Source: Octopus sinensis (taxonomy: Eukaryota). Taken from it: 64,000 bases of DNA. Position numbers and translations under genes: made by a program. The notes beneath the pieces were generated by a model. That model had not been told where the DNA came from. It did no database searches and saw only the letters and a list, made by a program, of their open reading frames with translations. The stretch is taken from NCBI RefSeq assembly GCF_006345805.1, contig NC_043007.1, positions 60,636,001 through 60,700,000 of the forward strand. The letters are read 5' to 3'. This document shows, in pieces, positions 76-59,445 of this stretch; the stretch's first letter is position 1; each line of letters opens with the position of its first letter.

Positions 76-372
76 TCCAAATTATTGAAATTACATGAAG
101 AATCTCTAAATCTGAACTCCAACAATGACATACTGAAGAATCAGATTGAAAAGCTAAAAATTGAACAGGATAATGATCAGCGCCACATTTTGGATAAACA
201 GCATACAATTGAAAAACTGAAGGAAGAGCTTGAATGTTTTTCTGCAAAGGAATCTAATTGGCAACAGGCTGAAACAAAATACAAATCAGAACTACAACAA
301 CAGCAAGCAAAGGTAGCTCAGATACAACAAGAGCTTTCTACTGTAAGCACTGAACTGAAATTAACAAATATG
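76..372 (+). CDS. NUMA1: NuMA/Mud-like coiled-coil protein, internal exon (gene starts upstream of window)
   Basis: TTTAG acceptor (AG 74-75) and ATG|GTAAGT donor after 372. 297 nt, phase 0-0, E/Q/K-rich heptad sequence SKLLKLHEE...ELKLTNM. Gene identity comes from the downstream tail exons linked by continuous phase. Confidence 0.8.
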
Positions 373-7117: not shown

Positions 7118-7308
7118 ATTCCCATTCTGAAGAATTGACTTTATCACAAACCAAGTGGGAGAAACTTAATGAGACTCAGTGTGCTAACTTAAGCAACTAT
7201 GAGAAAATTGTGACTGAGAAAGAACATCAGGTTGCAGGCATTAAACAGCAACTGTTGACTGAAAAGGAAGCCAACGCTGAGCTTGAAAAACATCTTGCTT
7301 CAAGCAAG
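7118..7308 (+). CDS. NUMA1: NuMA/Mud-like protein, internal exon
   Basis: Acceptor TTTTTGTAAAG, phase 1 (G+AT = Asp); encodes DSHSEELTLSQ...HLASSK; AAG|GTAAGT donor, phase 0. Confidence 0.85.
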
Positions 7309-7551: not shown

Positions 7552-7803
7552 GAAAACCATCGAGAAGAGATTAAGAACCTAAATAGCATCATAAATGAAG
7601 CAAGAGAAGAGTACCAGCAGCTGAAAAAGAAGATCAGCAGCACTGAAGTTTTTTTCCATAGCAGAGAACAAAAGTTAATCACAGATCACACCAAGACTTT
7701 GTCCAAGGCTGAAGAAATGAATACTTCTTTGGCCAGTCGCTTACAGATTTCCCACAAAGAGTTAGCGATATTTAAAAAGAAGCATGAAAATATATCTGCT
7801 GAG
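7552..7803 (+). CDS. NUMA1: NuMA/Mud-like protein, internal exon (absent from ORF track)
   Basis: TAG acceptor; 84 open codons ENHREEIKNLNSIINEAREEYQQLKKK...KHENISAE; GAG|GTAATT donor; phase 0-0. Confidence 0.85.
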
Positions 7804-8321: not shown

Positions 8322-8468
8322 GTGGAAAATATCAAAGAAGAACTCAAGACAACCAAACTAGAGAAGCAGGCTGTTGTTACTAAATTACAAGACTATGAAG
8401 TGTTTTATCTACAGAAAGAAGAGGAATTCTCTGACGTAAAACACAAACTTGAAATGGAAGTAACAAAG
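8322..8468 (+). CDS. NUMA1: NuMA/Mud-like protein, internal exon (absent from ORF track)
   Basis: Strong TTTTTTTCTCCAG acceptor; 49 codons VENIKEELKTTKLEKQ...KLEMEVTK; AAG|GTAGTA donor, phase 0 (an alternative in-phase donor GAA|GTAACA lies 9 nt upstream). Confidence 0.8.
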
Positions 8469-12003: not shown

Positions 12004-12229
12004 CTCAATGAGAAATATTCAGAGTCTCGGTTTGAAACTGAGAACCTTGAGAAATTAATAAAACACTACAAGACACACGAACATAACCTCCTTGCCAAGG
12101 TGAATGAGCGTGATGCTGAAGAAAAGAAGAATAATGAACGATTGATGAAGAAAGTGATGGAGTTAGAGAAAGAGAAATACTCATTCTCGGAGATACTGAA
12201 GAAAGAGCAGACTAAATTCCAAGAAACTT
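12004..12229 (+). CDS. NUMA1: NuMA/Mud-like protein, internal exon
   Basis: TTGTATTTTCAG acceptor; LNEKYSESRFETENLEKL...EQTKFQET; T|GTATGA donor (phase 1) matches the next acceptor at 15068. Confidence 0.82.
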
Positions 12230-12339: not shown

Positions 12340-12340
12340 G
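12234..12340 (+). repeat. (ATT)n microsatellite
   Basis: About 35 ATT/ATC/ATG units immediately after the exon donor. Confidence 0.95.
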
Positions 12341-12344
12341 TTGT

Positions 12345-12967: not shown

Positions 12968-13027
12968 TTTATTATTGTAAAGAGTTATGTCAATCTTTTA
13001 TAAATTATTATTATTATTATTATCATT

Positions 13028-15067: not shown

Positions 15068-15172
15068 ATAAAGAATGTAAAGATATGAAGAGAAAAATTG
15101 TGATATTAAATGAACAGCTTGAGAAGGCAGAAATGGCATTGTTTAACACTTCTCAATCACCAAACTGGGCCA
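15068..15172 (+). CDS. NUMA1: NuMA/Mud-like protein, exon at the end of the coiled coil
   Basis: TTTCCAG acceptor, phase 1; YKECKDMKRKIVILNEQLEKAEMALFNTSQSPNWA; A|GTAAGT donor, phase 1. Confidence 0.85.
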
Positions 15173-16715: not shown

Positions 16716-18904
16716 CTAGAAGATTAAAAAAATTATTATTTGAAAATCATTTTGCTCTGAAGATAGCATGTGATGGGTTATGGTTAGACTTAGAAACACA
16801 GTTCGTATTGTAACATAGATTAGTCATAACATGAACAGTTTTGTTTTGGTAATTTTGTCTTTTAAATTTTAGATGACTCTTTGGAATGTGCCTCAAGCAC
16901 ATTAAATAAAGTTCCTTATGATCTGAGGTCCAGAAGCAGTAACAAGATGAAAGATTATAACTTATCACCAATAAGGTTGGTTGGCTCAACGTTTGATTAT
17001 ATCACTCAAGTTTATTTCTATCTACAGCTTAGGATGTACAGTAGTTCATAGAATTTTCATCAATGATTTACAGTCCAGCTTGGGATACTTTTATGTTGCT
17101 AATGCAAGTGCATTGGATATTAGCATAATCGTTAAACCAGCTTTTATTCTCTCATACACTCTCACAAACTCCATCCACCTGCACTCCCTGTTCTCTTGTC
17201 CTCATTCACTTCTACTCACTGAGTGTCCTTGTTGTGGCACCAGGGTCCACTTTGATGCCTCATCACCACTATTTCATCTTTTTCCAGCTCCATTACACTC
17301 ACTCCCACCCTCTCTTCTAAAATGTTAGTATCCATGTAGATGTAGCTCCTCTGCTGCAAAAAACCTTTTCTTTTCTGTGTCCCCTTCTCTCATATTTAAT
17401 CCCTCCTATAAATCCACCTCCTTCTCTACTGAAGTCTCACTCAATTAAAGGGACTTTAGTCTTTTAAGCTGCATTACAATCTCACTAGTACTGGTGCCAC
17501 AACAAGAGCACTTATTACTTGCTGTAAACTGACAGATATTAGGAAGGGCATCCAGCCATAGAAACCATGCCAAAGCAGACTTTGGAGCACAATTCAGTCC
17601 TTGGACCTGTCAGATCCTGGGAAACCATCCTGTCCATGCCAGTGTGGAATATAGATGTTATGTGTTGATGCTTGATAATGACTAGAACACCAGGTAAGAT
17701 ATTTCAGTATTTACTGACATGCCCTTGACTTCTGAGTTCATATTAGAGCAAGGTCAATTTTACCATTAATTCTTCTAGAATTAATAAAGTACCATTCAAG
17801 CACTGCGATTTATTTAACTGACTCTTTCTTCCAAAATTTGTGGTTCTATGCATCGTCACCATCATTGTTTCATCATTCACTTTTCCATGCTTGCTTGGGT
17901 TGGCTGGAGTTTATTGAGGCAGATAAGTTTTGGTGCATGACTTTTGGCCTGCCTTGTATATTTACACGTTTTCACAGAATACTTGAAATGAACAACATTC
18001 GTTTACAACAATCAGGCATTGTCAAGATAAAAAGACATAAACACACATTCACATAAATGCATATATATGATGAGCATCTACCAAATCCACTCACAAGGCT
18101 TTGGTCAGCCTGGGGCTACAGTAGAAGACACTTGCACAAAGTGCCATGTGGTTGGGAAGCAAACTGCTTAACCAGACAACCATACCTGCATCTCTTGTCC
18201 ATGTAAGAATGTGTCTTAATTTTTTGTCATTTCCTATGCGTTTCCTTTATTTTTTCCATTTGATATATAAGTAAGGTTATTCACCACAACATTTTAAACA
18301 GTTGATGTATTAATTATTTAATCTCTTCCAGTGTGTATAGTACTTCAAGCATAAAGTCATTTGCTTCTAATGCCTCTACTTCATCAAGGACACCAGTACC
18401 TTGTAAGTATCCATTTACTCAGACTAATTGCTCAATTGTTATTTCCCTTCCTTTCATCACTCTTCTGGGTGAAAGAGAATTGATGAAAAGAATACTGAAA
18501 CTAAATAAATCCTTCATAAACACACCCTTGTTCTCCGTTTATTTTTTTGTGTATAGCTTAACAAAAGCTATAACTGGTGATACCATAAGAACAACAGCTC
18601 TCGCTTCACATATTGAAGTAAACAAAAAAAATCAATGGAAAACAAGAGTATGTTTATGAAGGATTTATTTAGTTTCATTTGGTTGGACACATCTGGGTGA
18701 AAGCAATAGGTCATCTTGCTCTTAGGAGAAATCCCGACTAACTGGAAGTTCTCTTCACTGCAGACCAGCTCACTAGCTAACCCACAGCAAAGTTCCTGTC
18801 TACAATTCATCTGTTATAAGTCCTTGAGCAGTACCCTACAATACCAAAAATATACTTGACTATCCACTATCAGAGTTCAGTATAGTATTTTTGATAGTTG
18901 AAAC

Positions 18905-20900: not shown

Positions 20901-21115
20901 CTGGCTGTGGCAAAATGTTTGCATGTGAGGATGAACCTAACACTTATGATTGGAGTCGGCTCACTGAAATTAAGCGACGAAACACTATGGTCCCTGCTCA
21001 CCTTCGTTCAACATATCCTGCTGAGCTGCAGAACATTCCAAGTCCATTTAAAGCTGACATCACTCTGCCAAAATCTGCAAGCAAACGCAAGCGGAAGAGT
21101 CCTGTCAGTTCTCAG
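20901..21115 (+). CDS. NUMA1: NuMA/Mud-like protein, exon with the NLM (LGN/Pins-binding) motif and a basic NLS-like stretch
   Basis: TTTTATTTTCAG acceptor, phase 1. ACEDEPNTYDWSRLTEIKRRNTMVPAHLRSTYPAE aligns by eye with the human NuMA segment TCQDEPEQLDDWNRIAELQQRNRVCPPHLKTCYPLE (recalled). SKRKRKSP basic cluster; CAG|GTAAC donor, phase 0. Confidence 0.88.
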
Positions 21116-22165
21116 GTAACATACTCTATTCTACTATTGCCATTCCTTTCTGTTTCTCCTTTTGCTTTATAAATGTTCTTGCTGTTATTTTTCTGCTTCT
21201 TTTAGTCATTCCCTAGTTCTTTTTTTTTCTTTTTGTTTTAACTTCACAGTTTTTCCCTTCACCTGCAAATTTACCTTACACTAATTGCTTTCAATTTCCT
21301 ACCATCTCCATTCCCTTTTCCTTGTATGTATGGGTGTGTATATATTCATTCTTATACTTAATGAAATCCTGGTTCTACTTTTGTTTCTGTGGAAGACAGA
21401 TTCAATTGAGCACTGTAACACCAAGGCAATACTATATATTATGTTGTTGTACATATTATGTATGTGTGTACGTGCATATATATATATACACATTATTTGG
21501 CATTAGAAGGGGCATGTGTGTGTATGTACACATATATATATATGTGTTTATATATGTGTATATATATATATTTGTGTATATATATGTGTATATATACATG
21601 TGTATATATATATATGTGTATATATATATGTATATATGTATAATGTATATATATATGTATATATATATTGACATTAAGAAGGGCATCATGGTACCAGGAA
21701 GAGCATCCAGCTGTAGAAACCATGCCAAATCAGACTGGAACCCAGTGCAGCTCTCCAACTCATCAGCTCCAGTCAAATCATCTAATCCATGCCAGCATGG
21801 GAGAGCAGACATTAAATGATGATGAGATATATATATATATATATATATATACTTGCATAATGAAGAGGTGATTAAGGTGTTGAACTCACAATCATGATTT
21901 CCATTCCTAGACTTGGTGGTGTGTTATGTCCTTGAGTAAAACACTTCATTTCACATTGCTCTGCAGTCATTTTGACATCTGATGTGTGGCACACTTCTGT
22001 ATGTGTACAAGCAGTGTCGATTTGATGGTGGGAGGTAGCTTATGTTAAACACAAACATTTAATCACAATAAGTAAACCATCTGGTTGTTCAGCAAGAAAT
22101 AGTGGAACCCTCATCTATTGTCAGAGTGAGAGTCCATAGTATATTATACGCAAATATACATACAA

Positions 22166-22202
<37 letters not shown>

Positions 22203-22680
22203 CATTCATTTAGACGTACTTTTTTCCATGCTAGCACAGTTTGGACAAATGTCTTTATTGAGGTTTTGTTTTACTGCCAAATGCCCTTCCTATTGCTAAC
22301 TTTTCTTGTTTTTCAACCAAGGAAGTTCTTATTTCATACATCTGATTCTATAAACCAGCTTTCTTTTCTTTATAGTGTTAAGTGGGATGGTGGATTAGCA
22401 GAATCATTAGAATATAGGACAATATGCCATGCAATAATCCTTCCAGCTCTTTATATTCAGAGTTCAAATGTAGCCCAGGTCAACTTTGCCTTTCCATCCC
22501 TCCAAAATCTATAAAGTACTAGCCAAGTACTGGGATTGATTTCACTAACTCCCAAAATTTGAGGCCATGTGCTTATGTTGGAATCAATTAGACAGTAAAA
22601 TTTACCATTAATGGTTGTTTGTATTGCTATTTTTGTTTCATTTTTTTATCTGTTACCCCTTCCTTTGCTTGAATCTTCAG

Positions 22681-22806
22681 AAAAGACATGTTAAAAGTGG
22701 AGGTCAAAATAATTTACAGCAAGCGAGAATTAAAAAAATCAACGATGAAAACACACCTCGTTCTGATAAACGATTACGAATAAAGTCACCCATTGGGCAG
22801 AAGGAG
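22681..22806 (+). CDS. NUMA1: NuMA/Mud-like protein, tail exon
   Basis: TCTTCAG acceptor; 42 codons KRHVKSGGQNN...ENTPRSDKRLRIKSPIGQKE; GAG|GTGAGA donor; phase 0-0. Confidence 0.8.
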
Positions 22807-24162
22807 GTGAGATCTTTCAGACATTCATGCCAAAACACACTCATGATAGCATGAAATAAAAATCCCTACTAACCCCACTGAATAAGTTCATACATACAGT
22901 TTTAAACAAAAGATTAATGAATGATCCTTTGATTTTGAATCATTGCATTGAAATATCTATATGATGCTCTTGTATTCTGAAATTTTGCATGCTAAAGACA
23001 AAATTACTTAATTTTCATATTTGTTGACATGTAAAAGGCATCCATGCCAGTGACATACAGGTCACTCATACTGGTGACACGTGAAAGGCACCCATACTGT
23101 TGACACAAGACACCCAGTACATTCTGTAGAGTGGTTGGTGTTAGAAAGGGTATCCAACCATACAAGCCAAAATAGACTGGAGCCTAGTGCAGCTTTCTAG
23201 CTTACTAGCTCCGATGAAACCATCTGACCCATGCCAGCATGGAAAACAGACGTTAAATGATGATGATGAATTCTTACCTAACACAACCAACTTATATGCT
23301 CCCAGCTGACCAGCTCCATGTCAAACTGTCCAACCCATGCCAACATGGAAAGCGGACATTAAACAATGATGATGATAATGATACACACATATATACAAGA
23401 TTGCCTCAACTTGTCAGATGATAACTGTCTCACATTATAGTGAGATATCTGTATGTCATTGGATTTAAGTGACAAAAGCTTGTACAACACTTTTTCCATT
23501 CTCTCTGGTGCCATAGTAGGTTCCAGTGACAAGCATTACAAGATGACTGGTACTATTTTGACTGCAAGTTTTATATCAGAGTATCTTTCTCTTAGAAGAG
23601 CTGCCTTCCCCACAGTTTTGTCAAAAATAACTGGAGCCTCTTCTATCTCTGAGAAATCTATTTAACCCATAGATGGGATCCTGGCAGAACAAACCTGGGA
23701 GTTGTGGTAATTAAGGAATGACTCCATACTCTCCAGAACTCCTGAGCTGGAGCCTCATCACTGAATACAGTTTAATGTCCTGCATACATACACACACAGC
23801 CATTGTGACATCTCTACTTCAGGATGAATGTCATTTTGAAATGTGTAGAAGGAAGCAGTATTTATTGAGTCACAAAGTGGTTTCAACTTTGTGTTAATTT
23901 AATTTAGGCATCTTAGTTTGGCGGAATGTTAATTTCTTTGAGGACATGGAGAATGAATTCATAAAAAGAAAAATATGTACTGCCCCAAAGATACATGGTT
24001 GCCATTTTGCTATTTCTTGATGTAAACCCTTTGAAAATTTTGGAAAACCTTAAAAATGTTTATAAAAGGTTATTTTGGTGTGCATGCTCTGTCTGATCTT
24101 TTATTTTGTCATGAATAGAACCATAGTTCTTAAGAAGGTTTTTACAATGTATTCATTTTCAG

Positions 24163-24249
24163 TATACTGGCCGACCAAGCATGGCATTTGATATAAGCAA
24201 CACACCCAAATTAGCTCGTCGCAGACAGAAAGGGCGGTCTACAATTTTA
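24163..24249 (+). CDS. NUMA1: NuMA/Mud-like protein, tail exon with SMAFxIxNTPK motif (absent from ORF track)
   Basis: CATTTTCAG acceptor; YTGRPSMAFDISNTPKLARRRQKGRSTIL; TTA|GTAAGT donor. Matches human NuMA SMAFSILNTPKK (recalled). Confidence 0.85.
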
Positions 24250-27200: not shown

Positions 27201-27569
27201 GATATGATTAGGAAGATATGGTTTAGCATAGAGGCTAGCAGAAACATTGTACAATTAACAATTTACTTTATCTTAGAACATTACCTACTACAAATTTGAG
27301 TTATGGTGGAGGCATCAAATGCTAGAGTTCTAATCAGTTTTATGACCACCACACCCTAAAGCACTTGGTATGAATAAATCTTTTAGAATGCCATTTATGT
27401 GTTATTTTGCCTCTAATGATTGAAGTATGGGTGTATTGGTGAGAAAGGGGTTTTAAATTATATAGTTTTAGTAAATAACTTGAAGGTTAGTGCCTTCTAA
27501 AATCAGTTATGAAAAATGTGTAACTTTATTTAAGCATGACTTGAAGGACTAAACTGTCCTATGTATGTG

Positions 27570-27623
<54 letters not shown>

Positions 27624-31404: not shown

Positions 31405-31467
31405 CACGAAGCTCAGCCTGAGAGAAAACCCTTGAGAACAAGAAATTTCACACAAACAAGTCTTTGA
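31405..31467 (+). CDS. NUMA1: Probable terminal coding exon of the NuMA/Mud-like gene
   Basis: TTGTCATTTCAG acceptor, phase 0; HEAQPERKPLRTRNFTQTSL-stop; followed by AT-rich UTR-like sequence with AATAAA at 31766. No homology support available. Confidence 0.45.
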   Translation, partial: HEAQPERKPLRTRNFTQTSL

Positions 31468-33827: not shown

Positions 33828-36800
33828 TCATCGTTGTCGTTGTCGTTCAATGTCTGCTTTCCATGCTGGCATGGGCTGGATGGTTTGACTGAGGTCTGAC
33901 GAACCAGAAGGCTTCACCAGGCTCCAATCTGACCTGGCAAAGTTTCTACAGCTGGGTGCCCTTCCTAATGCCAACCACTCCAAGAGTGTAGTGGGTGCTT
34001 TTACGTGCCACCTGCACGAGGGCCAGTCGGGTAGTTCTGGCAACGACCACGCTCAAAAGGTGTTTTTTACGTGCTACCTATACAGGAGCAAGTCCAGTGG
34101 CACTGGCAACAACCATGCTTGAATGGTGCTTTTTATGTGCCACTGGCATGGGAGCCAATCAGCGACCCTGGCAACGATCACACTCAGATGTGCTTTTAAC
34201 GTTCAACTGGCACAAGTGCCAATCAGGTGGTACTGTGATTGGCCACGTCAGCGATTTTGATTTCACTTGCCTCAACAGGTCTTTGCAAGCAAAGTTTATT
34301 GTCCAATGAATGAAAAGTACTAAGTGGGCTGGTTACACCCACTGGCATAGACCATGGATTATGGTCTCACTTGGCTTGTTGGGTATCCTCAAGCACAGCA
34401 TATCTCCAAAGGTCTCAGTTACTAGTCATTGCCTCAGTAAGGCCCAATGTTCAAAAGTTGTGCTTCACCACCTCATCCCAGGTCTTCCTGGGTGTACCTC
34501 TTTCACAAGTTCCCTCGACTGCTAGGGTGTGACACTTTTCCACACAGCTATCCTCATTCATTCACAACACATGACCATACCAGCACAGCCTTCTCTCTCT
34601 TGCACACCACATCTGATGCTTCTTAAATCCAACTTTTCTCTCAGGGTGCTTACACTCTGTCGTGTATGCACACTGACATTACACATCAAGCGGAGCATAC
34701 TGGCTTCATTCTTTGCAAGCTTACGCATGTCCTCAGCAGTCACAGCCCATGTAGCATGGCTGTTCATACACATGCATCATACAGTCTGGCTTTTACTCTG
34801 AGCGAGAGGCCCTTTGTTACCAGCAGAGGTAGGAGCTCTCTGAACTTTGCCCAGGCTATTCTTATTTTAGTAGCGACACTTTCAGAGCATCCACCCCCAC
34901 TACTGACTTAGTCCCCTGGGTAACGGAAGCCACCAACTACTTGTAGTTTTTCTCCCTGGAATGTGGCAGAAGTTGTTCTCTGCACATTTTCAGTGTTTAT
35001 TGCTCCCGAGCATCTGCCACATACAAAAACTATCTTCCCAGTTAGCCTTCTTTGATATTACTGCACCTCTTATGTGTCCATAGCTTACACTAGGTACATC
35101 TTATGGAGTTTCTGCCTACGCCTTTTCTACAGATCGAGCAGGGCCATCTACCTGAAGGGATTTGTGGTTTGTCTGCCTTCCTATTTATTAAGACTTTGGT
35201 TTTAGCTAGGTTGACTCTAAGGCCCTTTGATTCTAATCCTTGCTTCCATACCTGAAGCTTTTCCTCTAGTTCTGATAGTGACTCAGCAATTAGAGCAAGG
35301 TCATCAGCATAGAGGAGCTCCCAGGGGCATCCTGTCTTGAATTCCTCTGTTATTGCCTGGAGGACTATGATGAATAAGAGGGGGCTGAGGACTGTTCCTT
35401 GGTGGACCCCTCTCCAGAATTTTCACTGTACTCGTTGCTAACCCTCACCTCACTGACAGCATCCCTGTACATGGCTTGCACAGCTCTCACTAACCATTCA
35501 TCTATCCCTAATTTCCTCATTGACACAAGATAAGGAATCAGAGGACCCTATGCAAAGGCTTTCTCCATGTTAATGAAAGTACAAAGGTTTATCTTTGGCT
35601 AGGTATTTCTCTTGCAGCTGTCTTATAGCATCAGTGGTGCAAACCCAAACTGCATCTCATCAAGACTGACTCTCTCCCTAATTAGTTGGGCTATGACCCT
35701 CTCCATGACCTTCATTATCTGATCCAATAACTTGATACCTCTGTAATTATTTGTATCTAAAGCATCACCTTTACCTTTGTAGCAGTTGACTATGGTGCTG
35801 CTACACCAGTCATTGGGTATGACTCCTTTGTGTATCAACTATACGGGTGACTAGGCTATAGCCGACATCGTACACATATTTTGAGCATCTCTGCAGTGAT
35901 TCCTGAATGGCCAGGGGCTTTCCCTGTTTTCATACTCTTGATTGCTTTATCTACCAAGGTACTGTCAATTCGAATAGCTGGTCCCTCTGTTGGGTCAGCA
36001 TTCAGCAGACTCTCTTTCTCCCATTCACTCTCATTATTTATTTAGTGGCGTCTCCACCCCCTCTGCAGCCTTGCTTAATGCAAGTGAACCATCATCAATG
36101 CGGACACATTTCTTTCCTACGACATCACAATTCTTTTTCACATGCTGTCTTGCAACACAAAATACTTCAAGTCTTTGGTCCTCACAATGCAGAACATTGG
36201 CAAATTTTTTCTTATCTGCTTCCCGTCTGGCGAAATAAACCTGTCTCCTAGCTTCCATTCTGGCAGTCTGATACAGTTCCCTGCTACCACTACACTTTCA
36301 GTCCTTCCATGCCTGTTTCTTTTCCTTAATGGCCCTGTCAACAACATTGTTCCACCACCATGTTACCTTGGGTTGAGAGGGGACTTTGCACCATCCACAG
36401 ATCTGGTGAGTGGCCCTCAGCAGGTTGTCTTACACATATGTGATGCTATATCCCCCCCTACTTCATCAAAAGCTTTGAGTAATACGTCTCTAAATCTCTG
36501 TCCATTCACAGGATCTTTAAGCTTCCAGACCCTTCTCCTCCGTGCTGGTCGTCTTCTGGGCATCCACTTAGCCCTGATCCTGAAGTCACTAATTACCAGT
36601 CTATGTTGTGGGGCACATTCTTTGCCTGAGAAGGTTTTGGAATTTATAAGCAGCCATCTTTTCCTTTTTCTGGTGAGGATGTAGTCAATTTGGCTAGTGT
36701 GTCTACCAGATCGGTAGGTGACTGGAAGGTTTCCTGAAGTTAGTATTGCAAACCATAAGATCATTTTCATCTCAGAACTCCAGCAGCATGGTTCCCTCCT

Positions 36801-36880
36801 CATTTTGTGAACCAAAATCATAGCCTTCATGTACACCATGGAAGCTCCATGCATATTGTCCAACAAGGGCAATGTTCTTA
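33828..36880 (-). mobile_element. Older, multiply frameshifted RTE family A LINE with end of APE endonuclease, RT remnants and 3' UTR
   Basis: TYRSGRHTSQIDYIL and PQHRLVISDF (APE C-terminus), NYRGIKLLDQ, MQFGF, TWAVTAEDMRKL; nucleotide similarity to 50237-52703. Confidence 0.92.
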
Positions 36881-37062
36881 TTGGATGGCTGTTTTAGAAG
36901 TAGAAGAAAAAGACCTGTCAACTAAGTACAACATGTAAAGCTAGAAGTGAAAGACATTTAGATAACTGCTATTGAGAACTCCTTCCCATACACCTCAGCC
37001 TCATTCTGTGCACATCATACATATACACAGAGACCATATCTCAACCTAAACTTTCACCACCC

Positions 37063-41055: not shown

Positions 41056-41659
41056 TGGCCATGCTGGGGCACTGCCTTCAAGAATTTTAGTTGAACAAAT
41101 TACTTTTTTTAGTTGAACAAATTACTTTTTTTTAAAAACCTGGTACTTATTCTATTGGTATCTTTTGCCAAACTGCTAAGTTACGGGAACGTAAAGACAT
41201 CAGCATTAATTGCCAAGCAATGGTGGGGAACAAAGACACAGACACACTCTCTCTCACTCACTCACTCAGTACATTTTCAGTTTCCACTTATCAAATCCAC
41301 TCATGACGCTTTGGTTGGCCGATGGTTATAGTAGAAGATACCAGCTTAAGATGCCACGGAGTGGGATTGAACCTAGAACCAAGTGGGTTACGGGCGTTTT
41401 TACGTACATATACCGAAAGATCACCCATTAAGGTAAATCGAACAAATTTAATATGACTGTGTGGCATGGCTGGACATTTCAAATACAGTTATAATATAAT
41501 AAATATTTCCTCTAATAAATTTAATTAGCTAGACTAAATAAACAAATACTACATTAAAAGACACCTAGTAATGATTTCAGGCATTGAGATCGAACCCGGG
41601 ATCTCCTGATTATGAAATATGCTAATTAACTATTCGGCCATGATTGCGTATAAAGAAAG

Positions 41660-41975
41660 ATGGCGGAGAGTGGAGAACCTGCTTCAAAGAAACAGAAAGT
41701 AGAAGAGTTTAATAAAGTTAAGAAAGATCTAAGTAACTTTCAAGTCATCAAAGTTTTAAGAGAAGATGCTGCCAAAAAGCTTTTGGTCGTCGAAGGTAGA
41801 ATACAAGACAGTTCTGATGAAACTAGCAACGAAAACAAAGCCGTATTGTTTCTTGAACGAAATCCAATAAATATCGAATATGCCAAAGAATTAGTTCTTT
41901 CAGATCATATGGATGTCAGCTTCCGCAACGATTGTTATTATTCTTTATTGTTGGCGCCTTCTAAACCAAGTTACG
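41660..41975 (+). CDS. DCPS: m7GpppX diphosphatase (scavenger decapping enzyme), exon 1
   Basis: ATG at 41660; MAESGEPASKKQK (NLS-like)...FQVIKVLREDAAKK...AVLFLER...FRNDCY, resembling the DcpS N-terminal domain; G|GTAAA donor, phase 1. Confidence 0.88.
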
Positions 41976-42631
41976 GTAAAACATACCATTCATTTATTTT
42001 AAATAGATATTTTCTCGATATATTATTCGCCGTCATTTTCATGATTTTATTTTTGCATAAATATGAAAAAATAGGTGCAACTTGAAGAAAAGTATGAGAC
42101 CAGTAAGAGAATAAGTTATCCTCGTGTTTATAGTTCTAAATTCAAATTGGTGTATGTATGTGTATTTGTGTGGTTTTCTAGGAGTCGGTGTTTCGCTATA
42201 TGCATGTATGTAAGTTCACAATTTTAACTTTTATCATCCAAATTAGCGAAATTTCATCTCTCAGAGAACTAACCAACAACGAAATAGACATATATAGGAC
42301 TGTATTAAAAGACCAATTTGAATTTAGGACCGTAAAAGCGAGGATACCCCCTGAAAATGCAATAGCATAGCTGATATTTGGAATTTTCTTAATTTCATTC
42401 CTGCATACAAAAGTAAACCTTCAATAATTTCGTTTTTCCCGCTCGTTGAATGTCACTACTTTATTGACCGTTATTTTGTAAAAAGTCAACATTTCTTTTC
42501 TTTTGGGTATTTTTTACAAGGTTATGTCATAATATTTTCTGAAAATTTTATTAGATGCTTATTTATTGTTTTTTTTTTTTACGGCGGCAAATTTCTCTTT
42601 CTCTCTTCACACTGTGACTCCTTTGGTAACG

Positions 42632-43514: not shown

Positions 43515-46261
43515 TTGGTAACGAATGCTTTTCTATTAATTTGTTAATGAATAAAAGTGTGGCAACGAATGATTTCCTTAGATAAAAATTTACCAAAATT
43601 ATTTTAAAACTCATGTTACGAAATTTTCTCCGACGGGTTTGATCATTTTGAGGGGAAAAGTATTAGCTAAAAAGTGCGACAATAACAGGCTTAATAACAC
43701 TGATGCCTATTTTCTCGATTTCTATATCTAATATATTTCGAATTAGCTCCGATTGTCCAGGGTTGTTCGTCAATTGGAGACTAGATTAGATCAAACACCG
43801 TGTCACCAATCCACCGTCTTGTAAATGTTATACACACCGTTTATTTAGCAGGTGGGTGACTGGATCATTTATTTGCAAAAGAGCTAATTCTGTTTACGAA
43901 CAGCTTGGAGAATAAATGGAATTTAAAACTAGCGAAGTTGGACCCGAATTGTTCAAAAAACGTTCTGGGATTAACATTGTTACGAGACATGGCGAAGATG
44001 CCAACTGAGACACAGTTGCTGCAGGAGCATAATGTGTTGGACTTATGAAGGAAAGTAATTTGTGTTCTCGTGATGAGACTGGCTTGGGGGGGGGGGGATA
44101 TTCATGAAGTCCTACATTAGACAGGAGACCTGATTGTCTAAACATAAACCGATGGATAGGCAAACGGTACTTTTGGATTCTTCAGCAATTTTCACTGAAT
44201 CAGTATCATTATCTACATTTAACGTCTGTTTTCTATGCACAGGGCGACATCAAGTTCTAGTGTCAGCTTTGGTGTGGTTTTTAAGGGTGGATGTCCTTCC
44301 TAAAGCCAACTGCATTACAGTGTGTACTGGGTACTTTTTACATGGCATCAGCAAGGTCCATCAACACACCAGAGCAACTATGAAACTAGCCCATCTCAAT
44401 ATTGACAGCCCTGTTCAGGTAGCCCAACCACCCAACAGGGACTGCCCTAGGCAGATCACACCAACCCTTGACAAGAAACAGCCACCAAAGAACCGAGTAA
44501 CCACATGCATGGGCAGGACAATTAAAACGCCTTCCCAGTTCCAATGACAGTCAACAGTTCTGTGTGGGGAGCTATTTAGGGCAGGATTCATAACAGATGA
44601 ACTGTAGACAGGAATTTCGCTGCGGGCTAGCTGGGGAGTTGGTCTGCAGCGAAGTGGACTTGCAAAGAGAGAAGGGAGACAAAATAATGTTAGCAGTGAG
44701 CGTTAAATGAATCTGAATTAACTAAACAGACTAAACATAAATAATTGGCGACTTAAGCCCTGATGTATGTAAAGTAATAAACCATTGATAAATATATTCT
44801 TGTCTCCACTAGTGTATAGCTAAGTGGGTGGAGAGTATTTGAGAAGGGGCGGTATCTTTATGCCAGTTATTGAAAGGCTAAAGTATGATAGAAAGGCAAG
44901 CACAGGTGTCTTCCAGAAATAACATCAACTGCTTTAATGGCTTTGAGGAAAACAAAAACAATTAGATAGTTTTACTATGTGGATGACATATGAGCATATT
45001 TTTGCAATTTCCCAACTTTATGAGCCCTTTTCCAGGGAACTACACCAATGTATGCAAAATATCAGGTGTGTCATTGAAAATGTCATAAGGTAATAAATAG
45101 GTTCATTACTTATACAAAATTGTCCAGGTAGTTGTTAGGCCAAAATTTAAGATTACCTAAAAAACCCATGTAATTTATGCACTTTTTTCACAAACAAAAA
45201 TAAACTTTAGTGGGTGTGTAAGTTACATGAGTGAATTATTTCCAGATTTTGTTTAGAAATCTTTTTTGTTGAAAAATGACATACAAATTATAAACATTCG
45301 TATGGGAAGTTGACTCATTTAATGTCAGAATAGGTTTTTACAGATATAATGAAGTTGACTTTTATTTATGCTGGACGGTATAATACTTTTTCTGTATAAA
45401 TTTACTAAAACTATTAAATGGTTAACTACTTTTTACTATCGCAATGGAGCCCAGTAATTTCCTTAAATAGATCAATTTTGCTCAACTTAAGAAGTCTAGT
45501 TTGCATATGCCTCCAGGTAGCTAATTGCTCACTTTCTCTGCATTAGGACAATGAAATTCATCACTGCCAACATTGCCACTACTAGCTCTTACTACATCTA
45601 AAGTCGACAACATCATGATTCGTCCCTGCACATTTAAACTCACAAAGCGAATATGACTTAGCATGGATCTAGTCTTTTTCATTCACAAAATTAACCCCCT
45701 TTAATTTTGCTCAGATTGCTTTCAATTTTGGTGTATCAATGCAACTCTGAATTTTGATTATGATCAACTAATTACTTTATCTTATAAATTAAAGAATCTA
45801 ATGTTATTTGGAATTAAAGTTGGGAAATTTGGGTAATTTTAACCAAGCTACAGCTTGTTACCATGACAACTGCATATTGTGTTGTGTTCCACTTGTATGC
45901 TGTGTTGATTCTTCACACCATTGGATTTACTTCACCAGTATGTTCAGTGATTGTTTATTTTTAGAACAACCCTGTAGGGTTGGGGTGAGAGGCTGGATCT
46001 GGTTGGTTTGAACATAAAACTGGTAGACTATTTGGGGTGGATATGGTTGGTTTGAATGCTAAAGGGTTAAAGAAAAATGGTTACAGTTGTTGGCCAATCC
46101 TGATCAATCAGACCTAGAATCAAAGGTGTTTTGACTGTTACCATCCTGTATTTTTTGTATAAGGTATGATTCTGGTTGCTGTTTTCAGGAGTCTGAGAGA
46201 CCACATAGAGACTTGTTATTTTCAGCTGTTTGTTTACATAAGTTTTTTTTTTTCTTTGCAG

Positions 46262-46407
46262 ATGTAAAAGCAACATTTATTAATCCCGCCACAGACTTGC
46301 ACATTACCAAATATACTCAGCAAGAGTGTTTTGTTGTTCATGAAACACCAGAGATATATCAGAAAATTGCTTTGCCAGCCTTAGAAAAGGAAGCCCTTTG
46401 TATAGAC
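46262..46407 (+). CDS. DCPS: DcpS exon 2
   Basis: TTTGCAG acceptor, phase 1; DVKATFINPATDLHITKY...HETPEIY...LP resembles DcpS DVKTTVVYPATEKHLQKY; GAC|GTATGT donor. Confidence 0.92.
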
Positions 46408-47039
46408 GTATGTATTTTATCTTTCTTTTTTTTTCTCCAAGGAATTAATTTGCAGTGTTTTGGCCATGGAATAGCTTCCAGCTCATAAAGAAAAAGTGTA
46501 AAAAAAATACTGAAAACTTAGAACATTTTATATGAAATAGAAATGAAAAAAACCAGCTCTTTAATTTACAAAGAATTATTTTATGATGTTGCTATTTTTA
46601 ATTTATTTTGGAAAAATTTTCATCCAAAACTGTATTAAGACCAATATTGTTATAATTCAGAAGAGTCATGCTAATAAAGTCTATAAACACACTCACACAG
46701 ACAATATAGTTGTTGTGTGTGTAATGAAATAAAAGTGATATCAGTCTCACCATCATGTTCACATGTGACACTGACTTCAAAAACTTGGCAATATCCCTTC
46801 CATTATATTCCATGTCCTTGAAATCTAGCTGATATCTTTGCAAAACTCAGTCTTATCCTGTCTCTCACTCTCTCAAATGTCTCTCATCACTCCTTAGATT
46901 AAGCTCTCTGACCCAACCATTTCTGACCAATTTCTCTCATTTCTACCATCTTAAGGAGTATGGAAACAGTTATAAACAAACACTTCCATCCACTTCACTC
47001 TCTTCCTCCTACTGTAGAACCAAATCCAACACTTATATG

Positions 47040-48590: not shown

Positions 48591-49137
48591 TGACACACAA
48601 AGTACCCTGTACATGCTGTAAGGTGGTTGGCATTAGGAAGGGCATCCAGCCATAGGAACCATACTAAAGTAGACAGTAGACCACAATGCTGTCCTGGGAC
48701 CTTTCAGATCCTATAAAAACCATTCAACCCCTACCAGCAAGGAACATGGACGTTAAATGATGTTAATAATATATAATAATTATTGGCTATTTTTAATTGG
48801 CAAAAGTTACAAAGGGATTCAAGAGCAAAAGAATTTCATGTGTGGCACTTATCAAACAATGAAATATGTATATGACACACACATATATCTCGATACAGGA
48901 GCAAACAATTCACGAGAAAAATAATTCACAAAAAGTTGATTTGCAAAGATATTATTAATTCTGTTACTATCCAATGTAACTAATTTTTAAAATAACAGAA
49001 TCGCCTATATACATGCATGCATATATTAAATGATTATAAATAAAAATAAATATATAAAATGTAGTAAATTTTAACATGCATGCATGCATACATACATACA
49101 TACATTCTATCTATCTATCTTTTGGTTTTCTTTTCAG

Positions 49138-49362
49138 TGGGTATATAACATATTGAATAAGAAATCTGAAAAGGAGAGAATTTTATATGAAGACCCAGAT
49201 CCTGAAAAGGGATTCATTTTATTGCCTGATCTTAAATGGAATGGCACTGATATTGATTCCCTGTACTTTGTAGCCATTGTCCATAAACGTAACATTAAAT
49301 CAATTCGTGATCTCAACCAGTCACATTTACCAATGCTCAAGTCTATTCTCACTGAATGTCCT
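49138..49362 (+). CDS. DCPS: DcpS exon 3
   Basis: TTTTCAG acceptor; WVYNIL...GFILLPDLKW...SIRDL...HLPML, hallmark DcpS cap-binding motifs; CCT|GTAAGT donor; phase 0-0. Confidence 0.95.
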
Positions 49363-50236
49363 GTAAGTTGTCCCTTTCTTTCTCTTTTCTTATTTGTCAT
49401 TAGAAGATTAATTAATAAGTGATAATTAATAATAATAATAATTCAGCTGTTTGGAAATATTACAGTATGCCTGACATTTTATATTATTATGGAGTTGTAC
49501 CCCTTCCATATCTGTTATCAATCTGCTATTATCTGTTGAAACCGAATAATTTACATTGTGGTAGTCGGGCAGCCACTAAATTCACACATACATCTTAACA
49601 CTTAAATGGCTAACATGAATGTACCACAAGTTGTATTTCATAATATTTAATTTGATTCATGTTTTGCCATCTTCAAACATTCTGTTGGTTATTTCTTAAC
49701 AGTGTACCAATTTGGTTGGTTCATTTTTCTGTAACCAAACTAGTTAATAAGCTGATTTATTCCAACTGAGTTGGCCTTCTGTGGGCTTCATCAATATTTG
49801 GATGTATTAAATGATTATAAATAAAAATAAATATATAAAATGTAATAAAATTTAACTGATGTAACAAAATTTGTTCAATACCCTCTTTGGGTGCTTAATT
49901 ACATCAAATATGAATTATTATTGAACCAACAGAAATGTTAGTGCTCTGAACAGCATTGTCCATATAGCAATGTTGAACTTGTGTATTTCAAGTTCAAGTC
50001 ATATCAAGGTAAATAGAAATGAACACCAGTTTGCAGTAGAATTGATGTAGTTTACTACTCCTTGACAAACTTGTTGCTTGTTGCTATGTAAACCATCATC
50101 ATTACCTTTGACTCAGCACTTATATTAAATCTTGTACTTATTCTATTGGTCACCTTTGTGAAACCAATAAGTTATGGGTCATAAACAAACCAACACCTAT
50201 TATCAGGTAGTGGTGGGGGACAAAAACACACACACA

Positions 50237-52703
50237 CATCATCATCGTTTAACGTCCGTTCTCCATGCTAGCATGGGTTGGGCGGTTCGACCGGGGATCT
50301 GGGAAGCCAGAAGGCTGCACCAGACTCCAGTCTTATCTGGCAATGTTTCTACAGCTGGATGCCCTTCCTAACGCCAACCACTCCGTGAGTGTAGTGGGTG
50401 CTTTTTACGTGTCACCCGCACAGGTGCCAGGCGAGGCTGGCAGCGGCCACGGTCGGATTGGTGCATTTTACGTGCCACCGGCACGGAAGCCAGTCGAGGC
50501 GGCACTGGCTTCGGCCGCTATTTGGATGGTGCTTTTTACACGCCACCGGCACGGAAGCCAGTCTAGGTGGCGCTGGCATCGGCCATGATTCGGATAGTGC
50601 TTTTTACGTACCACCAGTCCAGGGGTCCTGGCATCTGCCGGGTGCCAGTCATAGGATTGGTTCAATATCAATTCCAATTTCGATTTCACTTGCCCCAACA
50701 TGTCTTCGCAAGCAAAGGGGGTTGGCATGGGTGCCTGTCGTCGGATGAGGTTCGATATCGACTTCGCTTGCCTCAACAGGTCTTTATGTCCAAGGGAGGA
50801 AAGGCATGCATAAGTGGGCTGGGCTCACTTGTCCTGGTCTTCTCAGGTACAGCATATTTCCAAAGGTCTCGGTCGCTGGTCATTTCCTCAGTGAGGCCTA
50901 AAGTTCGAAGGTCGTGCTTTACCACCTCGTCCCAGGTTTTCCTGGGTCTACCTCTTCCACGGGTTCCCTCAACTGCTAGGGATTGGCACTTTTTCACACA
51001 CCTATCTTCATCCATTCTCGCCACATGACCATACCAGCGCAATCGTCTTTCTTGCACACCACAACTGATGCTTCTTAGGTACAACATTTCTCTCAAGGTA
51101 CTAACGCTCTGTCGAGTATGTACACTGACATTACACATCCATCGGAGCATACTTACTTCATTCCTCGTGAGCTTACGCATGTCCTCAGCAGTCACGGCCC
51201 ATGTTTCACTGCCATGTAGCGTGGCTGTTCGTACACATGCATCATACAGTCCGCCTTTTACTCTGAGCGAGAGGCCTTTAGTCACCAGCAGAGGTAAGAG
51301 CTCCCTAAACTTTGCCCAGGCTATTCTTATTCTAGCAGTTACACTTTCAACGCACCCACCCCCACTACTGACTTGGTCACCTAGATAACGGAAGCTATCA
51401 ACTACTTCTAGTTTTTCCCCCTGGAAAGTGACGGAAGTTGTTTTCTGCAGATTTTCAGAGGTTAATGCTCCCGAGCATCTGCCACATACAAAAACTATCT
51501 TCCCAGTTAGCCTACCTTTGACATTGCTGCACCTCTTATGTGTCCATAGCTTACACTGGGTACATCTTATAGAGTTTCTACCTACACCTTTTCTACAGAT
51601 CGAGCAGGGCCATCTTCCTGAAGACATTTGTGGATTGTCTACCTTCCTACTTATTAGTACTTTGGTTTTAGCTAGGTTGACTCTAAGGCCCCTCGATTCT
51701 AAACCCTCCTTCCACACCTGGAACTTCTCCTCCAGTTCTTATAGTGACTCAGCAATTAGAGCAAGGTCGTCAGCATAGAGGAGCTCCCAGAGGCAACATG
51801 TCTTGAATTCCTCTGTAATTGCCTGGAGGACTATGATAAATAGGAGGGGGCTGAGTACTGAACCCTGGTGGACCCCAACCTCTACTTTGAATTCTTCTGT
51901 GCACATGTTGCCAACCCTAACCTTACTTACGGCATCTCTGTACATGGCTTGCACAGCCCTCACCAGCCATTCATCTATCCCTAGTTTCCTCATTGACCAC
52001 CAGATAAGGGATTGGGGGACCCTGTCAATGAAAGCCAGGTACAGGGGCTTATCTTTGGCTAGGTATTTCTCCTGCAGTTGCCTTACCAGGAATATAGCAT
52101 CAGTGGTACTTTTCCCTGGCACGAACCCAAACTGCATCTCATCTAAACTAACTCTCTCTAATTAGTTGGGCTATGACCCTCTCCGTAACCTTCATCACCT
52201 GATCCAACAGCTTGATACCTCTGTAATTATTTGTATCTAGGGCGTCACCTTTACCTTTGTAGCAGTTGACTAGTATGCTGCTACACCAGTCATTGGGTAT
52301 GACTCCTTCGTGTATCACCTGGTTGACTATACTGGTGACTAGGTTATAGCCAACACTGCCAGATATTTTGAGCATCTCTGCAGTAATTCCTGATGGGCCT
52401 GGGGCTTTCCCTGTCTTCATGCTTCTAATTGCTTTAACTACCAAAGAATTGTCAACTCGGATGGCTGGTCCCTCTGTTGGGTTGACTTTCGGCAGACTCT
52501 CTTTATCCCATTCATTTTCTTTATTCAGCAACCTTTCATAGTGGCATCTCCAAACCTCTCTCTTTGCATCCTCATTTAGCGCAAGTGAACCATCATCCAT
52601 GCGGACACATTTCTCTCCTACCACATCACGATTCTCTCTCACACACTGTCTTGCAACACGAAATACCTCAAGTCTTTCATCCTCATGGCTCAGAACATTG
52701 GCA
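50237..52703 (-). mobile_element. 5'-truncated RTE-clade LINE (family A), young but disabled, in DcpS intron 3
   Basis: RT motifs QFGFVPGKSTTDAIF, GVHQGSVLSPLLF, LLYADDL and SFRYLG; C-terminal RGRPRKTW; 3' UTR ending in a (GAT)n tail at 50237. Frameshift near 52140, in-frame stop at 51739, short deletion after LAFID. Confidence 0.95.
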
Positions 52704-52843
52704 GGCGTTAGGAAGGGCATCCAGCTGTAGAAACACTGCCAGATAAGACTGGAGCCTGGTGCAGCCTTCTGACTTCCCAGATCCCCAGTCGAACCGTCCA
52801 ACCCATGCTAGCATGGAGAACGGACGTTAAACGATTATGATGA

Positions 52844-56922: not shown

Positions 56923-59445
56923 TCTTTCTATATATAAAAGACAGTTTGTCTGTCTGTGTATCTGTCAGGTTGTACCCTCACCCTGACCATGGCTTTCAAC
57001 CGATTCTGATGAAACTTGACACACACATAGCCCAATGTCATAATTCAAAACTAACGCAGTGAAAATTTTGAAAAGTTCCCCCAGTTCTGAAAAAAATCGA
57101 TAAATTCGACATGGGGTCGAGAATCTAAGCTTTTCATATGCAACACATTTTCTGTTGTAGTTTTCGCAACTTGCAATCAATTTTCACCAAACTCATGGTG
57201 AAGCTTAGTGTTACCCTAAGGAACTTAATTCTGTTGTTAGTTTTCCATGCAATACCTTACCATCAGAAAAAAATCGATAAAATCATGTCATTTTGGGAAA
57301 TCGCATTCAAATTCAAGATGACATATTTTCGACAATATCTTTAACAAATTGGCAGGAATTTTTTTGAAATTCACAGTGAGCATCATGTCCCTTTTGATTC
57401 CAATAGGATACGTTATTACTAGAAAAAATCGGTTAATTACATCATATATGGCACACATAGCAAACCGATTTTTCTGATATATTTTTTGAAAGTTCCCATG
57501 AATTTTCCCTACACCGATGTTGGACATCAAGTTTGCATTAAATGTCAAACTAACGACCAGCAACGTAGGGGGATTTACTTCCATGACGCACCTGGCGGCA
57601 CTGGCAAAACCTTCGTCACGAAACTAATTCTGGCGGAGGTCAGATGCAACACGGACATTGCCCTGGCTGTAGTTTCCTCTGGTATTGCGGCCACATTGCT
57701 TCTGGGTTGCAGAACTGCCCACTCTGCCTTCAGACTCCCGCTCGATCTGGCAAAGTCCGATCTGCAACATCGCCAAGAACTCAGAACATGGGACGAGTGC
57801 ACTATGGCACACAAAGGCGCCCTTGAGGCACTGGACTGGTCCCTGCAAGACATCAGAGACTCTACGGCCCCCATGGGAGGATTGACGTTACTTTTTTCAG
57901 GAGACTTCAGGCAGACTCTACCTGTTATTCCTAAAGGAACCCGTGCATGCGTGCCTTAAGTCGTTAGCTCTTTGGGCACATGTGCGGCCCTTGCACCTCC
58001 AAACTAACATTCACACGCAGTTGATTGGTGACAGCGGATCCGCTGCATTCTCCAGAGACCTTTTATCGCTCGGTGAAAATAGGATGCCGGCTGCGTTCAA
58101 TTGGACTCGCTTTGCACCACTGTCGACACCCCTGCTAGCTTCCGGGACGCTGTCTTCCACAACCTACAAAACAATTTACGCGACCTAAAATGGCTGGCAG
58201 GCAGAGCTATTCTCGCACCCAAAAATACAACCGTCAGCTACTTGAAGCTATTCCTGGTGATGTCCACGTCTACAAATCTGATAATTAAATATATTTTACT
58301 GCTGATATATGCAAACATGTATGCATATATAGAACTTCTTGGTGTACTACATGTCTACAACCATGTGTGCATATCTGGGTATGGATCTTATATGTCATCT
58401 GTGTGTGTATATCTATTATTTTGTGTTTATTTACTATATGTTGCCACTTACATGTATTTTATAATATGAACGTATGTATCTGCGTATATACGTTTTGCAT
58501 ACACACACATATATATATACAGCAGACCCTGCCAAGCTTGCCGATTATCCTGTTGAATTCCTGAATTCACTTGAACCGCCACACATCCTGAAGTTAAAAG
58601 TCTGCGCGCCTATTATGCTCATCAGGAATTTGGTTCCACCTAAACAGTGCAACGGCACACATCTGGTTGTGAAACATTTGGCACCACATTTAATAATGGC
58701 CACAATACTTACCGGTTGTGGGAAGGGAGATGATGTCATGCACCTTCAACCGTCGGGCGCTGACCTACCAATCCATTTCAGGCGTTCTCAGTTTCCTGTT
58801 AAACTCTGCTTCACAATGTCCATCAATAAATCCCAAGGCCAAATGCTACAAGTCGCTGGGTTACATTTGGGCGAACAGTGCTTCGCCCATGGTCAACTCT
58901 ACGTGGGCTGTTCACGCGTTGGGAGGCGCAATGATGTTTTCATGTTTTCGCCCAAAGGGACAGCTAGAAACGTTGTATACACAGAAGTATTGGAGTGAAG
59001 AGAAGACATTGCAACCTACACATGCGCCTTCGTTCCCTAGAGGGATTAGTCGTTGCCTACTGGAGGCTCCCGAGCCCCCTTTCGCTAGACTTAAGTTAGG
59101 ATTAGGTAGGGCTTAGCTGTGGTCCGAACCTAACTTGTGTTGTGGGGGGGGGGGGTCAAAAGGGCCGGCATGTGCAACCATATCACCTCTGCCTGTCAAA
59201 CTCCCAACCCATGCGTTCCCGTCGTGACACTGATCTCGCAGAACTGGGTTGGGTGTGCTAAACAAAACCAGAAAATGCACTTTGACTGTCATAGATTTTC
59301 TTCATGCATGCAAGGGAATGGTGCCTTAATGCCTTTTAGGCTTCATTTTACAAAATAACGATTCAATGAGTACAAAAAAAGGGTAAAAAGGTAAAGGGCA
59401 TTGCCTATCGACAAAGTTCCTTACATACCCGGGCTATGCTGCTAG
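56923..59445 (+). mobile_element. Internally deleted Helitron with a disrupted PIF1-family helicase
   Basis: A|TC 5' end (ATA|TCTTTCTATATATAAAAG); helicase motifs [61 protein letters not shown]; 3' CATACCCGGGCTATG palindrome then CTAG|T at 59442-59446. No Rep domain seen. Confidence 0.9.

Follow-up and report, generated by a model that had tools for sequence, protein, structure and literature searches.

The forward strand of a 64,000-nucleotide (nt) stretch of the Octopus sinensis genome (assembly GCF_006345805.1, contig NC_043007.1, positions 60,636,001 to 60,700,000; hereafter "the window", in whose own numbering all coordinates are given) very probably carries, from position 76 to position 31467, the 3′ four-fifths of the octopod single-copy-type orthologue of NuMA/Mud/LIN-5, encoded in 13 exons comprising 1765 codons. 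NuMA is an animal protein that couples dynein to the cell cortex. This identification, proposed by the initial annotation, is borne out by the matches retrieved from a large protein library, by a profile search of the PDB and by a colinear orthologue from the octopod Argonauta hians that possesses a NuMA-type Hook domain. The gene is an ordinary orthologue of a known animal-wide gene and not a new kind of system; the novelty implied at the outset does not hold, since NuMA is already annotated in other molluscs. Indeed, public databases contain NuMA orthologues from molluscs and further invertebrates, some of them correctly named, and a literature search yielded no paper connecting NuMA with cephalopods.

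Homology of the tail

The 71-residue peptide encoded by the exon located at 20901–21115 (the Tip exon) retrieved 56 proteins at E ≤ 1e-3 in an exhaustive HMMER search of 1,835,955,588 proteins. The strict NLM-core pattern is present in 52 of these and a variant form in the Lingula match, so that NLM-bearing proteins amount to 53 of the 56, with E-values ranging from 3e-28 to 1e-3; the other three (P0007, P0024 and P0055) are bacterial repeat proteins that score via many weak stretches and were set aside as artefacts. The proteins of Hippocampus (seahorse, P0049), Nematostella (sea anemone), Plakobranchus (sea slug; partial) and Sinanodonta (UniRef) are named NuMA1, those of Anneissia (crinoid), Saccoglossus (acorn worm), Lingula (brachiopod) and Cherax (crayfish) NuMA1-like, and one further match (P0048, E 2.8e-4) is the human-type exon peptide MGTCQDEPEQLDDWNRIAELQQRNRVCPPHLKTCYPLESR. 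The reciprocal relationship on which the assignment had been made to depend is therefore with NuMA-named proteins of a vertebrate, a cnidarian, an echinoderm, a hemichordate, a brachiopod, molluscs and a crustacean and, the three artefacts apart, with nothing else. The matches from Argonauta, Argopecten, Tubulanus, Ptychodera and Arion bear generic or empty database labels, such as "COP1-interactive protein 1-like", "leucine-rich repeat-containing protein DDB_G0290503" or "uncharacterized protein", which is the kind of mislabelling that had been predicted for this gene. The best match of all, from Argonauta hians (GAB1599847.1, P0001; 2233 residues), is itself named "COP1-interactive protein 1-like isoform X2".

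A single-sequence search of the PDB with the tail matched only 6hc2_B and 3ro2_B, i.e., the human NuMA peptides from co-crystals with LGN, at E-values (~1) that are weak because these chains are short. The same two chains, and no others, were matched by a profile built on the C-termini of 11 proteins belonging to seven phyla, in this case at 2e-7 and 7e-6, so that the NLM alignment attains significance. With one fish NuMA among its sequences, the profile does not constitute fully independent evidence, whereas the single-exon library search does. Furthermore, translating the window in six frames yields a single instance of the strict motif pattern, and 200 shuffles yield none, which, together with the E-values of the library matches, excludes a chance origin of the motif.

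Architecture of the Tip exon

The Tip exon had been credited with a single NLM motif, EDEP...DW.R..E...RN...P.HL...YP.E. The motif is present, but its first part, EDEP..DW.R, is the minimal LGN-binding peptide, while the NLM proper starts at about E...RN, the two elements overlapping (PMC8047419, PMC12505299). The NLM, which spans ~30–36 residues and corresponds to residues 1922–1957 of human NuMA, is represented in the octopus by E...RN...P.HL...YP.E at 20966–21025, and nine columns of the alignment (E, W, R, E, R, N, H, Y and E) are invariant in 11 sequences across phyla.

The candidate LGN/Pins TPR-binding peptide is SGCGKMFACEDEPNTYDWSRLTEIKRRN. Its segment MFACEDEPNTY-DWSRLTEI aligns with MGTCQDEPEQLDDWNRIAEL of both 6hc2_B and 3ro2_B and, in the HMMER alignment extended to MFACEDEPNTY-DWSRLTEIKRRN, with MGTCQDEPEQLDDWNRIAELQQRN of the same chains. 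The human LGN contacts QDE1894–96, R1905 and I1906 (PMC3438535) correspond to EDE, R and L in the octopus. A TPR-binding peptide adjoining and overlapping the NLM can thus be recognized at the level of sequence. A single-sequence AlphaFold2 model of the exon, of low confidence (pLDDT 65), places a helix on WSRLTEIKRR, and the matching segment is helical in the LGN complex (PMC3438535). Conservation of the LGN-binding core MF.CEDEP..(F)(D/E)W.R extends to hemichordates, an echinoderm, molluscs and a nemertean; outside vertebrates, Finegan et al. reported the vertebrate-type core only in Saccoglossus.

The KRKRK run, resembling a nuclear localization signal (NLS), was found where it had been noted, and a basic KRKR-type cluster lies 18–53 residues past the NLM in 30 of the 40 homologues with enough sequence, which belong to many phyla. 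The NLS of NuMA, which in the vertebrate-type tail separates two microtubule-binding regions, has been described as a vertebrate acquisition (PMC8047419).

Gene model and continuity of coil and tail

The exon model (Table 1) was built from colinearity with the Argonauta protein together with splice-site and phase logic. The 13 exons constitute one open frame of 1765 residues ending with TGA, with AG/GT at every junction and neither stop nor frameshift in 5298 coding nt; an AATAAA is found at 31766, 300 nt past the stop. Residues 456–2233 of the Argonauta protein are colinear with all 13 exons, with 59% identity over 1743 positions, rising to 78–86% in the Tip exon, the 87-nt (SMAF) exon and the last exon, and linker, KRKRK run and C-terminus are alike in the two species. 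The giant coiled-coil exon of Argonauta contains an expanded ALNKDLTEQIEILNxEKQ repeat array that is absent from the octopus window.

The splicing of the tail exons to the coil exons, which the initial annotation had presumed, is seen both in the Argonauta model and in a contig of a relative. The latter (Logan contig L001, RNA-derived) is 1121 nt long, has an Illumina adapter at its 5′ end and includes a stop codon and 3′ untranslated region; its continuous open reading frame (ORF; P0002), which crosses seven window intron positions, is 50% identical to the window protein over the whole part between the coil end and the C-terminal residue, and it encodes without a break in frame the end of the coil, the NLM, the KRKR cluster, the SMAF..TPK motif and the C-terminus. 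This contig and the Argonauta model make a split gene unlikely.

Table 1. Features of the window, in order of position within each group
Feature	Position	Strand	Evidence
NuMA/Mud/LIN-5 orthologue
Coiled-coil exon, first in window	76..372	+	tblastn, Argonauta residues 456–557, 64% identity, E 3e-31; AG/GT sites
Giant coiled-coil exon, 3415 nt, 1138 codons	1611..5025	+	Open frame; Argonauta 558–1152, 65% identity, E 0
Coiled-coil exon	7118..7308	+	Argonauta colinearity; splice sites
Coiled-coil exon	7552..7803	+	69% identity to Argonauta; splice sites
Coiled-coil exon	8322..8468	+	Argonauta colinearity; splice sites
Coiled-coil exon, weak donor CTT/GTATGA	12004..12229	+	Phase logic; Argonauta 1901–1975 aligned up to 12228
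Last coiled-coil exon (KECKDMKRKIVILNEQLEKAEMALFNTSQSPNWA)	15068..15172	+	Sequence; Argonauta colinearity
Linker exon (NDSLECASSTLNKVPYDLRSRSSNKMKDYNLSPI)	16873..16975	+	Sequence and phases; Argonauta and cDNA linker NDSLE...Y.LRS matched
Linker exon (VYSTSSIKSFASNASTSSRTPVP)	18332..18402	+	Splice phases; Argonauta colinearity
Tip exon, 215 nt, (S)GCGKMFACEDEPNTYDWSRLTEIKRRNTMVPAHLRSTYPAELQNIPSPFKADITLPKSASKRKRKSPVSSQ: LGN/Pins-binding-type peptide, NLM, basic cluster	20901..21115	+	Homology; splice sites
MFACEDEPNTYDWSRLTEIKRRNTMVPAHLRSTYPAE: acidic EDE/EPN stretch, W-x-R-L, NLM core	20915..21025	+	HMMER alignment to 6hc2_B, 3ro2_B
KRKRK basic cluster (NLS-like), 19 residues past NLM	21083..21097	+	Direct reading
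Basic tail exon with two S/T-P sites, 126 nt, phase 0-0	22681..22806	+	Argonauta colinearity; splice sites
87-nt exon, T2055-type motif, YTGRPSMAFDISNTPKLARRRQKGRSTIL	24163..24249	+	83% identity to Argonauta, E 3e-10
Last coding exon HEAQPERKPLRTRNFTQTSL, stop TGA 31465–31467	31405..31467	+	86% identity to Argonauta C-terminus
Other features
Retroelement, two copies (one degraded)	50776..52807, 35093..36893	-	Reverse-transcriptase-like ORFs by eye; weak sub-threshold PHD-finger match
DcpS scavenger mRNA-decapping enzyme	41654..42082, 46135..46485, 49075..49419	+	Pfam DcpS 2.5e-15, DcpS_C 6e-15
PIF1-like (Helitron-type) helicase ORFs	57423..57956, 58465..58995	+	E 3.6e-33

The three tail exons already recognized (20901–21115, 22681–22806 and 24163–24249) turned out to lie exactly where they had been placed, with canonical AG/GT sites and compatible phases. 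On the other hand, the extent of the gene had to be revised, since the earlier exon set lacked both linker exons and the last coding exon, and the gene does not end at 24249. Two other 3′ ends were considered, namely a terminal exon candidate at 24360 (KFNCTKNFRPKDHSSDFSSDQ and stop) and read-through of the 24249 donor (…STILVS and stop, 24256–24258); both were rejected as the main end because, in the Argonauta protein as in the cDNA, the sequence goes on into the peptide encoded by exon 31405–31467, and no poly(A) signal is found within 1.2 kb after the stop at 24258. Likewise, a stronger-looking donor at 12099 was rejected in favor of that at 12229 on account of phase and of the homology extending up to 12228. 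The direct junction 15172>20901, which the earlier exon set implied, is in frame because the two linker exons total 174 nt and thus constitute an in-frame cassette, but it omits two conserved exons. Isoform X3 of the hemichordate Ptychodera skips the equivalent 51-residue linker; a short-linker minor isoform is therefore possible, and indeed plausible, in the octopus as well.

The introns harbor repeats of several kinds. A 32-bp satellite (14 copies, 96% match, 647–1094) occupies part of the first intron, a (TAT)36 microsatellite (12229–12339, identified by Tandem Repeats Finder) begins 2 nt past the donor of exon 12004–12229, and four copies (at 21787, 22223, 23229 and 23335) of an element resembling a short interspersed element (SINE) are found in the introns that separate the tail exons.

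Rod and N-terminal Hook domain

The part of the rod contained in the window is ~1480 residues long, derives mostly from the single 3415-nt exon and contains three prolines (0.2% Pro), 0.8% Gly and 49% E+K+Q+L. From this composition and from the homology with the Argonauta rod, a long central coiled coil exceeding 1000 residues, as in NuMA and Mud, is predicted. Within the giant exon, five E(Y/F)E.KI..(D/N)(Y/F)V units recur at intervals of 54–58 residues (4218–4922, model residues 870–1104).

We infer from Argonauta that ~455 N-terminal residues, including the Hook domain, are encoded upstream of the window. The presence of such a domain had been anticipated, and it is found in the Argonauta orthologue, whose N-terminal 160 residues match the Pfam family HOOK_N_NuMA (PF21670) with 39.7 bits (E 5e-10, cut-off 27) and score only 20.8 bits, under the cut-off of 23.5, on the generic HOOK_N. 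The N-terminal 160 residues of five other invertebrate orthologues also pass the HOOK_N_NuMA gathering score. The domain is detected on the isolated N-terminal 160 residues only, being missed in full-length Pfam scans of P0001, P0043 and P0051, and the N-terminus of Argonauta, searched against the PDB as a single sequence, returned nothing but noise.

Linker, T2055-type motif and C-terminus

The linker connecting the coil to the Tip peptide had been judged much shorter than in vertebrates. It is indeed short, ~75 residues vs ~200 in vertebrate NuMA, but 58 residues longer than had been estimated, because exons 16873–16975 and 18332–18402 intervene.

The motif SMAFDISNTPK, compared from the start with the CDK1 site T2055 of human NuMA, is encoded in the 87-nt exon. 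RPSMAFDISNTPK occupies 24175–24210, the motif itself 24178–24210 and the codon of the threonine 24202–24204. The pattern [RK].S.AF.I..[ST]P is shared by cnidarian, echinoderm, hemichordate and mollusc sequences and by fish NuMA, where it reads RRQSLMFTVDNTPK. SMAF-x-I-x-N-TP-K represents the counterpart of the human T2055 motif. Since the residue at +3 is Leu, the site conforms only to the minimal T-P type. The "several S/T-P sites" that had been remarked upon amount to eight past the coiled coil, five of them within the three tail exons first recognized.

The octopus protein ends with RKPLRTRNFTQTSL. Comparison of the C-termini of P0001, P0002, P0043, P0036 and P0068 reveals a conserved RKPL.TRN(F)..T.[LVI]-COOH in cephalopods, scallop and slug, and ETNI in Saccoglossus. 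Molluscan NuMA thus ends with T-x-L/V, a class-I PDZ-ligand pattern, in the form of T-S-L in octopus and Argonauta, T-N-L in the cDNA relative, T-G-V in the scallop and T-G-L in the slug. Isoform X2 of the scallop swaps the last exon for another.

Points of doubt and alternative readings

Several observations weigh against the identification of this gene as a NuMA orthologue, or against parts of it. The Hook exons lie outside the window and are attributed to the octopus gene only through Argonauta; no Pfam family is found on the tail, Pfam being devoid of a C-terminal NuMA model; and word-indexed homology searches with the spliced tail and with the giant exon gave no matches. (The word-indexed search also missed the Argonauta protein, despite an exact stretch of 30 residues common to it and the query.) As the initial annotation had remarked, no ESLxxLYFTP-type clustering motif (human 1768–1777) exists in the six frames of the window, the linker having NDSLE...Y.LRS. 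Within the putative LGN-binding peptide, the human LGN contact Phe1888 has no residue in register, a conserved Phe being located 3 positions nearer the Cys, and EPE has become EPN, with Asn in place of its second Glu. Finally, binding to LGN, microtubules and importin is predicted, and the support for splicing stems from the sequences of relatives.

This last circumstance would be compatible with the tail exons (20901–31467) and the coil exons (76–15172) being separate transcription units, or with the Tip peptide occurring only in rare isoforms; indeed, the Tip exons are skipped in Drosophila gonadal isoforms (PMC12505299), and isoforms of Ptychodera and Argopecten differ in linker and last exon. 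Either arrangement is highly improbable, however, since the phases match within one open frame, the Argonauta protein is colinear and the cDNA-type contig of the relative is continuous from coil to C-terminus, while skipping just the Tip exon (215 nt) would cause a frameshift. It is equally improbable that the gene is not the functional orthologue but a NuMA paralogue peculiar to the lineage or a copy that was inactivated recently. Because the library is reduced to a single representative of each 50% cluster, paralogues may be hidden, and overall identity with Argonauta is only 59%; yet the open frame is intact, all splice sites are canonical and conservation peaks at the functional motifs, which points to purifying selection. 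As to a long coiled-coil gene of a generic kind (resembling myosin, golgin or CENP) with NuMA-like tail motifs arisen by chance, its probability is negligible, for although Pfam finds on the giant exon only sub-threshold coiled-coil families (Rab11-FIP3, 17.7 bits, cut-off 31.9; no match of myosin tail, golgin or CENP-F above the gathering score) and the close relatives carry generic coiled-coil names, this reading is refuted by the shuffles, by a library search that retrieves NLM-bearing proteins and no other real family, by a PDB profile that matches NuMA only and by the NuMA-specific Hook domain of the Argonauta orthologue.

Comparison with known members of the family

Having identified the gene as a NuMA orthologue, its product can be compared with the best known members of the family. 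Vertebrate NuMA (human NUMA1, seahorse NuMA1) likewise has the Hook domain, shared with the Argonauta orthologue, and a coil of more than 1000 residues, encoded in human NUMA1 mostly by one giant exon. Octopus and vertebrate proteins also share the C(Q/E)DEP..DW.R(I/L).E core, the NLM, an RKR/KRKR cluster past the NLM and the (R)xS(M/L)(A/M)Fx(I/V)xNTPK motif with its CDK threonine. On the other hand, the ESLETLYFTP clustering motif of vertebrates is absent in the octopus, in which the vertebrate EPE is EPN and the upstream Phe stands 3 residues away from its vertebrate position, whereas the C-terminal RKPLRTRNFTQTSL has no vertebrate equivalent. The octopus tail extends for only ~35 residues past the TP motif, unlike the longer vertebrate tail, so that most of MTBD2 and of the DNA-binding region are without counterpart.

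Drosophila Mud shares with the octopus protein the acidic EDE preceding the NLM and the NLM itself, and it has a Hook domain as does the Argonauta orthologue (PMC12505299). However, the arthropod NLM exon ends at the last K/R of the motif (PMC12505299), whereas that of the octopus continues through KRKRK, and the vertebrate-type LGN-binding sequence is not recognizably conserved in arthropods (PMC12505299), in contrast to the vertebrate-like MF.CEDEP..DW.R of the octopus. Moreover, the crayfish orthologue lacks the SMAF..TPK motif that the octopus has.

With its 821 residues, C. elegans LIN-5 is much shorter than NuMA. Like the octopus protein, it is a member of the family defined by the NLM, but LIN-5 is devoid of an NLS (PMC8047419). 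Since there is no nematode among the 56 library matches, the octopus protein appears far closer to the vertebrate/cnidarian type. The HOOK1-3 dynein adaptors have, like NuMA, an N-terminal Hook/CH fold that precedes a coiled coil, but lack the NLM.

The octopus tail is nearer to the vertebrate/cnidarian type than to that of fly or worm, and the comparison suggests that the vertebrate-type LGN-binding core, the NLS-like cluster and the T2055-type motif were retained in vertebrates and lost in Ecdysozoa.

Mechanistic implications

The protein would dimerise through the rod and be anchored at the cortex by Galpha-LGN/Pins via the acidic EDE-P stretch and the W-x-R-L of the Tip peptide, while the NLM region and the basic tail would bind microtubules. 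Proline-directed phosphorylation by CDK1 of the TP in SMAFDISNTPK may shift the protein between spindle poles and cortex, and dynein-dynactin would be recruited via the upstream Hook, CC1-box and Spindly-like region seen in the Argonauta orthologue. The first three steps find support at the level of sequence, the other two in what is known of the family (PMC8047419, PMC3438535, PMC12505299).

A more far-reaching proposal, which is unlikely to be right, is that KRKRK as an importin-dependent NLS and SMAF..TPK as a CDK1-controlled cortex/spindle switch are both functional and ancestral to animals, and that the PDZ-ligand C-terminus of molluscs tethers NuMA directly to a PDZ polarity protein, this tethering being toggled by alternative last exons such as that of scallop isoform X2.

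Other features of the window

The window is AT-rich metazoan DNA (31–49% G+C in 2-kb steps) containing microsatellites and SINE-like repeats. The SINE-like element, with core CCATGCCAGCATGGAAA, is present window-wide in 18 copies on both strands, vs 0.24 expected. In the 3′ flank of the NuMA gene there is a ~420-bp tandem duplication (32046–32330 and 32468–32750), recognized from its duplicated ORF translations, and the first gene to follow downstream encodes DcpS (Table 1). The PIF1-like ORFs are interrupted by an insert whose sequence recurs at 53502–53783, and the two retroelement copies overlap the G+C-rich blocks of the window. ARAGORN detected no tRNA within the window.

Significance

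These data supply a cephalopod member of the Galpha-LGN-NuMA-dynein spindle-positioning module and indicate that, in the gene sets of cephalopods and bivalves, a key cell-division gene is concealed behind the names of generic coiled-coil proteins, from among which the 71-residue Tip-exon probe recovers it reliably. The LGN-binding core, the KRKR cluster and the molluscan T-x-L/V end go slightly beyond published accounts, the functional roles suggested for them being hypotheses. What emerges is a protostome that retains three elements lost or blurred in flies and worms, namely the LGN-binding core of vertebrate type, the NLS-like cluster and the T2055-type motif. This pattern of retention and loss bears on two questions left open in a review of the family, that of the reason for which vertebrate NuMA "acquired" an NLS and that of the evolution of the gene (PMC8047419).

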